NCBI GenBank assembly: GCA_946965045.2
Contig: OX337232.1
Span: 2,852,001-2,916,000, forward strand
Origin: Epithemia pelagica
Taxonomy: Eukaryota > Protista > Bacillariophyta
DNA: 64,000 bases
Direction of reading: 5' to 3'
Positions 5,230-10,599 of the stretch are shown here, in pieces. The translations under genes and the position numbers were made by a program. Below the pieces are notes generated by a model. That model saw only the letters and a program-made list of their open reading frames with translations, did no database searches and was not told the DNA's origin. The stretch's first letter is position 1, and every line of letters begins with the position of its first letter.

Positions 5230-8200
5230 ATGAAACCGTCCATGGGTGGTGCAGGCTGGTGGAATGGACGAGCTGCTGGACGACTGGTTGTCGTCTTTGT
5301 CGTCGTCGTCGTCGAGGTAGCCATTTCACTGAATGACGTCGGTGTTGGAGCCTTTGCTCCCTTGTCCATTCGAAGGAGGACGGTCGCCGAATCCTTTTGG
5401 TTGCCGTCGTCGTCGTCGTCCCGATTGAATGCCATTCCTCCTTCCAACCAGTCGGGTCCAGACAGCAGCAACAACAACAACCCATCGGAGAACAACAGTG
5501 GCACCACTCCACCACCATTGGTCCATCCTCAACCACCCACGACCATTACGCGTCATGATTTGGCACGGCGACAAGTGGCCAATCCTCTCTTGTTGGGACG
5601 ACAACGACAACACGAACGATCCTCCTCGTCTCCCCCAGTAGCACAAGCCGCGGCACACCGACGTACTACCACCACGACAACCACACCGGCCAACATTCCC
5701 ACCATTCGTCGCGGAGGTCCTCGATTGCAATCTTCCTCTTCGTCGTCGTCGTCGCCGTCTCGACCAGCAGTCACATCGACACCAAAATCGACACCAAAGC
5801 AACCACAACCACAAATGACCTTTCGACCACGTCCCACGACCACCACCATGCAGGCATTGACCGCAACGGAACGTCAAACCGCCACAGCCTTGTCGTCGAC
5901 GGCCGCACAACGAGGACAACACCATCATCAACAACAACGGCATCAACAACCATCTCCCTCCAAACCATTCGCCACTACCACAAGAAGTACCACGACACGA
6001 ACCTTGTCGTCGTCGTCACAACCACGAGTGATGACTGCCAGATCCAACCAACCACAACCGCAACGACGACAGGTGCAAGTGGTGGCCAATCGTGTTCGTC
6101 CCGAACCACCATCCACTCCTCCAGCTCCTCCCGTCTTTCATACAACGTCAAAAGACGGAAGCAACCAGACAACGACAACCACGACTACCAGTAGTAGCAG
6201 CAGCAATCGCCGTTCCATTCAAGTGCAACCCACGAGTGAATCCTCCTCGGTCCGCTCGACAACGACTACTACTACTTTGTCGGAGCCCGAACCAACCACC
6301 CCCCAAGTACCGCCCGTTGTTACCACCACCTTTCGAAAAACCACCACCTTTCAACAACAACAGCAACAACATCAAATGAGTCGTCGTCAACGTCAAGTCT
6401 CGATTCACAATGATTCCCCACGAATGACCGCCATGGCCAAGCAACGCAAGACGGTGAGTGCGAGCAGTCCCATTCTCCAGGGAGCTGGACCCACAGCATC
6501 ACCACCGCCACGACGCCAAGTAGGAACCACTGTCACGAGCCGCAATGCCAATTTTCGAGGACAAGGCGATGGTCCTCGACGACAACAACGACCACAACGT
6601 TCCTATTATCGACCACCACCCAGCGATCGTAGTACTACCAGCACTCAACAAGGATCACCGGAAACGAGCAAGACCATTACCACCAGCATGTGGATTCCGC
6701 CCTCGGCTTCCACGCCCAAGGAACCCGAACCACCACAACCAGCCGTGCCCGGATCCGAACCACCACCCGCAACCGTCGCACAAACAACCACGGAATCCAC
6801 CACCGCCCCACAACAGAATGATACCGCGCCACATGCCAATGCCGAGGGATCGTCGTTGTATGACCGTCGCAATCAACACTTGGTGCAAGCTATTGAGGCG
6901 GGACACGACACGCGATGGGGTGTCCTGGAAACCAACAAGGCAACAGCCGCAACAAGGACGAATGAAACCAATGCGATTGGGGGTGGCCAGGGATGGACCC
7001 TTCCCACCACGACGACGACGACGAGTACGGCAAGTACGACGAGTACGGCCATGGACGAGTTGGCTCGTGCCTGGGGTGCCATGAATCAAGATCATGACGA
7101 TACGACAGCGTCGTCGTCTTTCCAGTCGGAACCACCGCGAGTCCCCCTGGAGGCTGCTGACACGGCAGCAAAGTCGGAACCACCCCCACCGACTTTCCGA
7201 ACGGAACCACCAGTACTCGCAATGGAAGCTGCTTCCTCCCAACCACCACCAGCCACCTCCTCTATGACCATGGAGGACTTGGCCCGGGCCTGGGGAACCA
7301 TGAATCAAGATCATGAGGACACGTCGTCGTCTGCCACAATGCCTCCTGTTGCAGCTGCTCTCAAACAGGAGGCTCCTCCTGCATCATCATCATCACCATC
7401 ATTCGAGTCATTGCCGCGGTCGGAAGCAGACTTGTATCAGCAACGCAATCAGCATTTGGTGGCAGCCGTCGAGGCTGGACACGAGACTCGGTGGGGAGTC
7501 TTGGAAACGGACAAGGCAGCCGCGGAACATCAAGTCCAACACCAGGTCATTGGAAAAAGCAGTCACGACAACGACAAGGACAACAACAAAGAAGGCACCA
7601 CCACTGCTTCCTTTGCCACCGAAGCTCCCTCGTCGAGTACTACTAGTACAACAACAACCATGGAAGACTTGGCCCGTGCTTGGGGTGCCATGAATCAAGA
7701 TCATGATGACACGTCGTCGTCGTCGTCTAGCACCATGCCGCCCGTTGCAGCTTCTCCTCCTGCATCATCCTCATTCGAGTCATTGCCGCGGTCGGAAGCA
7801 GACTTGTATCAGCAACGTAATCAGCATTTAGTGGCGGCCGTCGAGGCTGGACACGAAACGCGATGGGGAGTCTTGGAAACGGACAAGGCAGCCGCCGAAC
7901 TACGCATTCCACACGATGTGATTGGAAAAAGCATCCAAGACGACAAAAAAGCAGGAACCACTGCTTCCTTTGCCACCGAAGCTCCTTCGTCGAGTACTAC
8001 TAGTACAACAACAATGGAAGACTTGGCCCGTGCCTGGGGTGCCATGAATCAAGATCATGATGACACGTCGTCGTCGTCGTCGTCTAGCACAATGCCTCCT
8101 GTTGCAGCTTCTCCTCCTGCATCATCCTCATTCGAGTCATTGCCGCGGTCGGAAGCAGACTTGTATCAGCAACGCAATCAGCATTTAGTGGCGGCCGTCG

Positions 8201-10599: not shown

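Follow-up and report, generated by a model that had tools for sequence, protein, structure and literature searches.

We analysed a stretch of 64,000 nucleotides (nt) from the diatom Epithemia pelagica (NCBI GenBank assembly GCA_946965045.2, contig OX337232.1, positions 2,852,001 to 2,916,000 of the forward strand), referred to below as the window, with a focus on gene A, a long open reading frame (ORF). The predicted product of gene A carries 17 copies of a short tryptophan-bearing helix, here called the sticker, which closely resembles the helix by which the diatom protein PYCO1 contacts the Rubisco large subunit (RbcL). Judged from its sequence, gene A appears to encode a protein of the Rubisco sticker-and-spacer type that is built on the known large-subunit sticker of PYCO1 and that contains a second, previously undescribed module, which we call RWG. 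The features of gene A, together with related features of its neighbours, are collected in Table 1.

Gene A and its sticker array

The coding boundary of gene A was placed by comparing alleles. From nt 4999 on, every insertion or deletion (indel) between alleles within the ORF is a multiple of 3, whereas the indels just upstream of nt 4951 (window 4800-5000) measure 1, 2, 2 and 4 nt. The true start is probably M94 at nt 5230, and the 93 codons that precede it in the ORF probably represent read-through of the 5' leader. ORFs on the minus strand beneath gene A were discarded as low-complexity shadows of the plus frame. M94 is followed by a hydrophobic core (LVVVFVVVVVEVAISL), the sequence GVGA joined to FAPLS, and a Ser/Arg-rich stretch. 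With this ASAFAP-type junction, recognised by eye and by Kyte-Doolittle hydropathy, the product is predicted to be a nuclear-encoded protein targeted to the diatom plastid. Amino acids (aa) 105-136 form the sole hydrophobic segment of the protein (Kyte-Doolittle up to 2.5). Since this segment is the signal peptide, and hydropathy revealed no other membrane segment, the mature protein should be soluble.

The pattern [MIF][DEN][DEI]LA[RQ][EA]W[GS]xx[NK] matches exactly 17 times in gene A, from a first match at nt 7051 (aa 701) through to a final one at nt 10543 (aa 1865). This is the number that the initial annotation had claimed, and none of 2000 shuffles of the protein produced a match. A looser form of the sticker, scanned in six frames across the whole window, was found outside gene A only at the C-terminus of gene D. 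The annotation had also described a drift from WGAMN-type to WSTRN-type motifs, and this was confirmed copy by copy: WG[AT]MN in copies 1-11, WSSIN in copy 12, WSTRN/K in copies 13-15, WSARN in copy 16 and WSKRN in copy 17. Its two further statements, that the last copy lies at the C-terminus and that a KWSP-type sticker is lacking, likewise held, as only KDPETE stands between the last copy and the stop, and no [KR]W[ST]P occurs anywhere in gene A. Successive stickers are 45-73 aa (n = 12) or 118-130 aa (n = 4) apart. The conserved positions 0, 3, 4, 7, 10 and 11 (M, L, A, W, M/R and N) follow an i, i+3/4, i+7, i+11 spacing and fall on one face of the helix, and the hydrophobic moment of the stickers is 0.38-0.45.

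The array combines sections of different age. Tandem Repeats Finder assigned copies 3-5 to a recent tandem repeat with a period of 357 nt (7391-8669) and copies 13-16 to another with a period of 162 nt (9886-10445). Copies 6-12 make up an older, diverged section with a period of 45-69 aa, in which mean identity is 80% for the 16-aa sticker versus 32% for the spacers. The codons at invariant sticker residues vary (four for Ala, namely GCC, GCA, GCT and GCG, four for Arg, two for Asn and two for Leu), so it is the peptide rather than the DNA that is conserved. The listed allelic codon changes in gene A comprise 20 synonymous and 17 non-synonymous changes, and the L, A, W and N of the stickers are untouched by any of them. 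Synonymous codon use and the contrast in identity between stickers and spacers establish that the sticker is under purifying selection, and the array is more than a mere recent DNA duplication.

These data bear on the reading that gene A is a non-functional or unexpressed repeat ORF in rapid expansion. Two of its blocks are indeed recent tandem amplifications, and the public runs that contain its sequence (n = 4) resemble genomic assemblies of the same species, with contigs of at most 0.5 Mb and even depth, and no RNA run is listed. Nevertheless, we regard this reading as very improbable, given a frame that stays open over its whole length, allelic indels that keep the frame, an excess of synonymous changes, conservation that is specific to the motif while its codons vary synonymously, and a two-module relative that is transcribed in Entomoneis paludosa (MMETSP transcript, P0007 cluster).

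The mature protein is divided into three parts, a basic arm followed by five repeats of ~120 residues and twelve repeats of ~54 residues. The arm, ~500 aa long, consists of 45% Ser, Thr and Pro (S/T/P) and 10% Gln, with 57 Lys and Arg and 20 Asp and Glu residues; S/T/P content ranges from 32 to 45% across the regions of gene A. The sticker-bearing two thirds carry a net charge of -114. Each ~120-residue repeat contains one sticker and one RWG module (LYQQRNQHLVAAVEAGHETRWGVLET), and each ~54-residue repeat contains one sticker, the final one being C-terminal. When aa 1141-1420 were modelled from the single sequence with AlphaFold2, helices coincided precisely with stickers 5-9 and with the RWG module and were seen nowhere else, and the spacers and other non-helical parts had predicted local distance difference test (pLDDT) values below 50 (138 of the 280 modelled residues). 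The spacers had been described as disordered in the initial annotation; their S/T/P-rich composition and low pLDDT agree with this, except that five of them hold a conserved helix-loop-helix module of ~35 aa.

This RWG module, of the form LYxxRxxKVAAxAxAGKSRWGxMENxKA, was modelled from a 45-sequence alignment as a helix-loop-helix with 24 residues at pLDDT of at least 90. Foldseek returned nothing for it in the PDB at E <= 0.001, and it corresponds to no Pfam family. RWG modules are present in 14 of the 68 sticker proteins described below, with up to 15 copies in a protein from Entomoneis; the module thus recurs in sticker proteins of several diatoms (P0007, P0026, P0047 and P0053). In a Pfam search no family reached the cut-off with gene A itself; Ploopntkinase3, HTH_AraC, Intimin_C and CDC48_N scored below it and were taken as noise. 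Look-alikes in the ESM Atlas, with scores of at most 0.64, were rejected as unrelated, being merely generic tandem-repeat ligand proteins.

Table 1. Positions in the window of the features of gene A and of related features in genes B and D
Feature	Position (nt)	Strand	Remarks
Gene A ORF	4951..10599	+	1882 codons, single exon; no stop over 5.6 kb
Signal peptide of diatom bipartite plastid presequence	5230..5352	+	predicted cleavage between GVGA and FAPLS, Phe at +1, ASAFAP-type
Transit-peptide-like start, then basic S/T/P/Q-rich disordered N arm	5353..6840	+	net charge +37
RWG module 1 (LYDRRNQHLVQAIEAGHDTRWGVLET)	6856..6954	+	
RWG module 2	7432..7530	+	
RWG module 3	7804..7902	+	AlphaFold2 on alignment A2: helix 9-25, loop, helix 33-45
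RWG module 4	8161..8259	+	
RWG module 5	8539..8637	+	helical in single-sequence AlphaFold2, residues 54-100 of P0001:1141-1420
Stickers 1-5 (MDELARAWGAMN, MEDLARAWG[AT]MN)	7051..8406	+	36 nt each; starts 7051, 7270, 7660, 8014, 8371
Stickers 6-12 ([IM][ED]DLA[RQ][EA]WG/SxxN)	8749..9720	+	36 nt each; starts 8749, 8908, 9055, 9190, 9349, 9508, 9685
Stickers 13-16 (M[DN]DLAR[EA]WS[TA]R[NK])	9892..10413	+	starts 9892, 10054, 10216, 10378
Sticker 17 (MDILAQEWSKRN), then KDPETE and stop	10543..10599	+	C-terminal copy, 6 residues before stop
RWG modules of gene B (iota-carbonic anhydrase)	12758-12928 and 13382-13552		two copies in disordered arm
Gene D C-terminus, four stickers (WxxLAxxWxxxN), last C-terminal	27326..27817	+	profile A1 scores 27-37 bits per copy; belongs to a neighbouring gene, not to gene A

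The PYCO1 helix and the sticker proteins of diatoms

In PYCO1 (Phatr3_J49957; PF24428), residues 577-585, AAEWGSMNQ, form the helix that is bound in a hydrophobic cleft of RbcL, with W580 in a pocket of F102, F104, L361, F366 and F482 and with N584 bonding to Y89. A second copy, ASEWASMNT, occupies residues 532-540, and the context of the two motifs is printed in the supplement as YGNLAAEWGSMNQ and YGNLASEWASMNT (PMC10288592). The sequence AAEWGSMNQ, which the initial annotation had given, was thereby verified at its source (Oh et al. 2023). The gene A sticker agrees with this helix at L, A, E, W, G, M, N and Q (DLAREWGAMNQ, compared with NLAAEWGSMNQ and NLASEWASMNT in PYCO1), and the contact residues Trp and Asn show little or no variation among the copies of gene A. 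A profile, A1, built from 24 stickers of this genome alone (from gene A, gene D and the paralogue P0002), aligned precisely the two RbcL motifs of PYCO1, LASEWASMNTE and LAAEWGSMNQGD, with a score of 29.5 bits, the best of 2000 shuffles reaching 6.8 bits. In a search of PDB sequences the sticker profile matched no chain, the modelled PYCO1 peptides presumably falling under the 20-residue limit, and the comparison consequently relies on the sequence printed in the supplement. At the level of sequence, the gene A sticker is homologous to the RbcL sticker of PYCO1, and the link is statistically solid.

PF24428 (gathering score 27 bits) gave no match, either with the whole of gene A at E <= 1 or with aa 1267-1882 at E <= 10, and the controls P0037, P0039, P0033 and P0042 scored 28-86 bits. 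Two features mark the PYCO1 family: a C-terminal xLAxEWxSMNx helix with Trp and Asn, which gene A contains in 17 copies, and KWSP[RQ]/GTGYNP motifs, in place of which gene A has just three [ST]WTP[EP] and one AWTY in its spacers. Given the lack of a PF24428 match and of KWSP, we place gene A outside the PYCO1 family, with which it has one module in common. The two proteins are alike in having the last copy beside the C-terminus, a plastid presequence and a disordered sticker-and-spacer build. However, PYCO1 combines five to six KWSP[RQ]GGS small-subunit stickers and GTGYNP tyrosine motifs with just two RbcL stickers, whereas gene A is three times as long, contains 17 RbcL stickers and five RWG modules, and has a repeat region that is acidic rather than neutral or basic. 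The flanks of the sticker also differ, being acidic DHD in gene A and GDSS in PYCO1.

The [ST]WTP[EP] motifs lie in spacers 7, 9 and 10 (window 8989-9003, 9280-9294 and 9445-9459; aa 1347, 1444 and 1499). They resemble the GGWTPP/TSWSPP that follows the KWSP sticker in the PYCO1-like proteins P0033 and P0037, where PYCO1 has GTGYNP, and could represent a weak aromatic self-association element.

Profile A1 was run exhaustively against 1.84 billion (1.84e9) representative proteins and found 68 at E <= 0.001, including 33 at E <= 1e-10. Gene A, with 632 bits over 17 stretches, was the second best of the 68, and P0003 was the top match. All named sources of the matches (Entomoneis paludosa, Epithemia clementina, Amphora coffeiformis and Phaeodactylum tricornutum) are raphid pennates. 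A word-based search with aa 600-1789 of gene A returned only gene A and its paralogue P0002, the low-complexity words having probably swamped the search, which was capped at 8000 candidates. A set of 230 non-redundant stickers, drawn from 63 proteins not encoded in this genome, has the consensus S-[MW]-[ED]-[DQ]-L-A-[RK]-E-W-A-x-[MR]-N-x-[DE], which is the same as that of gene A; across the family, Trp and Asn are the positions conserved best. We define here, for pennate diatoms, an LAxEWxxxN sticker class by at least two copies of the motif at a score significant against the 1.84e9 proteins, each on a short, isolated predicted helix with a conserved face, a class to which gene A belongs.

Four of the matches (P0033, P0037, P0039 and P0042) pass PF24428, 'PYCO1 Rubisco-binding repeat', and in these the sticker SMADLAKxWAxMN alternates with KW[ST]P; nineteen other sticker proteins have no Pfam family. 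About 30 of the 68 begin with a signal peptide followed by Phe or Tyr. The last sticker lies at most 7 residues from the C-terminus in 31 of the 68, among them gene A, gene D, P0002 and all PYCO1-like matches, and nearly so in PYCO1, which suggests that the terminal copy has a special role. In P. tricornutum, B7GCF0 (170 aa; P0105/P0112) is apparently a truncated model, the C-terminal fragment of a 587-aa protein (P0105) that combines a signal peptide with four YGNLAKEWASMNRED stickers and a long coiled coil; the accession B7GCF0 is close to that of PYCO1 (B7GCF7). As P. tricornutum can be transformed, this four-sticker protein lends itself readily to testing.

Further sticker proteins are encoded in the genome of E. 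pelagica. P0003 (L002:10001-22402; ENA ERZ21939226 ctg1322l) is 4133 aa long and carries about 50-60 stickers, mostly LATQWGSMNQDED, with a period of 54-57 aa. A plastid-type signal is present, and towards the C-terminus there are a transmembrane helix and a basic tail; we regard the protein as a candidate membrane-to-Rubisco tether. P0003 also matched DUF4450, with 44.5 bits in total over 13 repeat stretches, but we take this to be, most likely, an artefact of its repeats. A second cluster of sticker genes was noted at L001:1-13093 (ENA ERZ21939226 ctg1348l), on the same 1.49-Mb contig as the window. P0047, of 3961 aa, has five RWG modules and at least two stickers, and beyond a MatE transporter gene lies P0002, of 1030 aa, with seven stickers, one of them terminal, and one RWG module. 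The PYCO1-type P0037 is found on two contigs of the same assembly (ENA ERZ21939226). Within the searchable literature, the motif strings occur only in PMC10288592, and no high-valency RbcL-sticker protein of diatoms is described. Reviews and the pyrenoid studies of T. pseudonana and P. tricornutum mention no diatom linker other than PYCO1.

Possible roles of gene A in the pyrenoid

The pyrenoids of diatoms account for about a fifth of global CO2 fixation. In pennate diatoms no structural matrix protein other than PYCO1 is known so far, and the large-subunit sticker of this protein has been regarded as a weak, subsidiary contact. Our results point to a plastid-targeted family based on this RbcL sticker, present in anything from 2 to about 60 copies, and to a second common module. 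We propose, at about even confidence, that the product of gene A is a plastid-imported, multivalent RbcL-binding scaffold and a strong candidate for the pyrenoid. Under this proposal, for which we infer binding, pyrenoid location, cross-linking and expression alike: (i) each helix would present a single face of Met, Leu-Ala, Trp, Met/Arg and Asn; (ii) a single sticker would bind weakly, and seventeen of them on flexible spacers of 45-130 residues would give avidity; (iii) one chain could bridge several Rubisco holoenzymes, each with eight sites, and would cross-link or hold Rubisco in the pyrenoid matrix; and (iv) the five RWG modules would supply a second contact with some partner.

The build of gene A fits that of known linkers. 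Gene A shows all three features of the FLIPPer anatomy (PMC11570498). It is largely disordered, and its structured elements have the expected spacing of 20-120 residues, with 13 of the 16 intervals at 45-119 aa and the other three (126, 130 and a borderline 118-119) containing an RWG module. The initial annotation had gone further in proposing a high-valency linker made almost wholly of the second PYCO1 sticker type. The presequence and the sticker-and-spacer anatomy uphold part of this proposal, whereas the five RWG modules, the long basic arm, the acidic charge and the presence of P0037 and P0003 speak against the rest.

Several observations weigh against a linker function. Basic charge as in EPYC1, a typical though not strict feature of linkers, is not found in the sticker region, which is strongly acidic, the N arm alone being positive; in PYCO1-like linkers the charge ranges from neutral to basic. 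EPYC1 is itself very basic, and Rubisco is an acidic protein. With the sticker region of gene A and Rubisco both acidic, electrostatics may oppose condensation. Since the genome also contains the PYCO1-type P0037 and the far larger P0003, gene A may be accessory and need not be the linker. The genomic-like character of the public runs described above belongs on the same side, as does the behaviour of PYCO1 itself: fragments bearing only the RbcL stickers produced no shift in native polyacrylamide gel electrophoresis (PMC10288592), from which it follows that binding by this sticker is weak.

The structural evidence for the PYCO1 contact consists of one cryo-electron microscopy density into which two candidate helices were fitted (PMC10288592). 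Together with the weakness of the contact and the different flanks (DHD and GDSS), this would accommodate a reading in which the LAxEWxxxN helix of gene A binds a non-Rubisco partner, either another plastid protein or itself, and is similar to PYCO1 only as a generic amphipathic Trp helix. We consider this improbable, because the motif is very rare (68 proteins in 1.84e9) and, where found, is confined to plastid-targeted diatom proteins that include Pfam-certified PYCO1 repeats, and because the contact residues of the solved structure, Trp and Asn, are those best conserved across the family.

A tether or organiser, rather than a matrix linker, is a serious rival to the proposed scaffold in view of the acidic charge, which argues against simple condensation with acidic Rubisco, the true PYCO1-type gene in the same genome and the larger paralogue. 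Here the stickers would anchor the protein within or upon the Rubisco matrix, while the RWG modules and the basic N arm would hold a further component, for example the pyrenoid shell, the penetrating thylakoid or an enzyme such as iota-carbonic anhydrase; alternatively, gene A would tune the density or fluidity of the matrix by competing for RbcL sites. A tether of this kind would be comparable to the SAGA and RBMP proteins of Chlamydomonas, which carry a Rubisco-binding motif. The RWG modules, which are common to the iota-carbonic anhydrase gene B and the 14 sticker proteins mentioned above, are predicted to fold as a separate unit, and the C-terminal transmembrane helix of P0003 provides the anatomy of a tether. 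Yet seventeen stickers at linker-like spacing far exceed the needs of anchoring, and gene A has neither a membrane segment nor a known domain. Taking both sides into account, we judge a tether or modulator to be rather unlikely, and retain the multivalent scaffold as our working model.

Such a scaffold would have parallels in other lineages. Like gene A, CsLinker of Chlorella sorokiniana (Barrett et al. 2024, PMC11570498) and the Chlamydomonas protein EPYC1 are disordered and bear helices of ~10 residues at regular intervals. These helices bind Rubisco multivalently, those of CsLinker on the large subunit, as would be expected for the sticker type of gene A. Unlike gene A, the two are known from experiment to phase-separate Rubisco; they serve green-type form IB rather than red-type form ID Rubisco, have 5-6 stickers instead of 17, and have no sequence relation to gene A.

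Meyer et al. reportedly described in 2020 a set of Rubisco-binding-motif (RBM) proteins in Chlamydomonas, SAGA1/2 and RBMP1/2. The motif is common to the linker and many other pyrenoid proteins of this alga (10.1101/2023.10.26.564148), and RBM proteins are also present in Ulva (10.64898/2026.07.16.738900). As in the sticker family, one short motif is spread over a linker and other proteins, some with at least 7 copies. The diatom counterpart would be the 68 proteins that include PYCO1-type linkers, coiled-coil proteins and a membrane-anchored giant. A shared-motif logic of this kind for diatoms was hinted at in one Discussion sentence (PMC10288592). The RBM proteins differ from the diatom stickers in their motif and in the Rubisco site that it engages. 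In alpha-carboxysomes, CsoS2 is a long disordered scaffold with many short repeated peptides that bind Rubisco by avidity. Unlike gene A, it is bacterial, has basic motifs that act at the L2 interface, and is unrelated in sequence. Our findings suggest that the assembly of red-type (form ID) Rubisco follows a motif-based logic similar to that of the green-algal RBM. They also offer candidate proteins and peptides for testing, and possible parts for engineered Rubisco condensates around the large subunit.

Genes around gene A and a possible two-module code

Four other genes of the window, at 12584-14812, 17009-21484, 24020-27817 and 46654-50127, encode two iota-carbonic anhydrases, the gene D protein and a PF25192 protein, all of which start with a signal peptide followed by Phe. 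These genes are of the pyrenoid type, and we count this neighbourhood in favour of the scaffold model. The two iota-carbonic anhydrases have long disordered arms, and gene B, which encodes one of them next to gene A, contains two RWG modules. The PF25192 protein, of 1157 aa, has its diatom pyrenoid-shell domain (E 2e-52) behind a disordered extension of ~890 aa.

A tentative extension of the scaffold model, which we hold to be possible but short of probable, is that the pyrenoid of pennates is organised by a proteome-wide code of two modules, the RbcL Trp helix and RWG, in which gene A and P0003 would act as giant-valency scaffolds built on the 'weak' sticker of PYCO1. If so, this sticker would supply most of the avidity by which gene A and P0003 keep Rubisco together and attach it to membranes or the shell, and part of the genes concerned would lie in clusters with iota-carbonic anhydrases and a gene for a pyrenoid-shell domain.

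Another short motif, LP[KR]QWAALR, recurs among the neighbours of gene A, with four copies in gene B (aa 137-230), two in gene C (aa 118-150) and one in g46654 (aa 580-590), the gene of the pyrenoid-shell-domain protein. Although its L..W..L register is similar, the profile ruled it out as the same sticker, with at most 0.4 bits. It is comparable to DLAKQWAAMN of the PYCO1-like proteins and may constitute a separate Trp-helix address.

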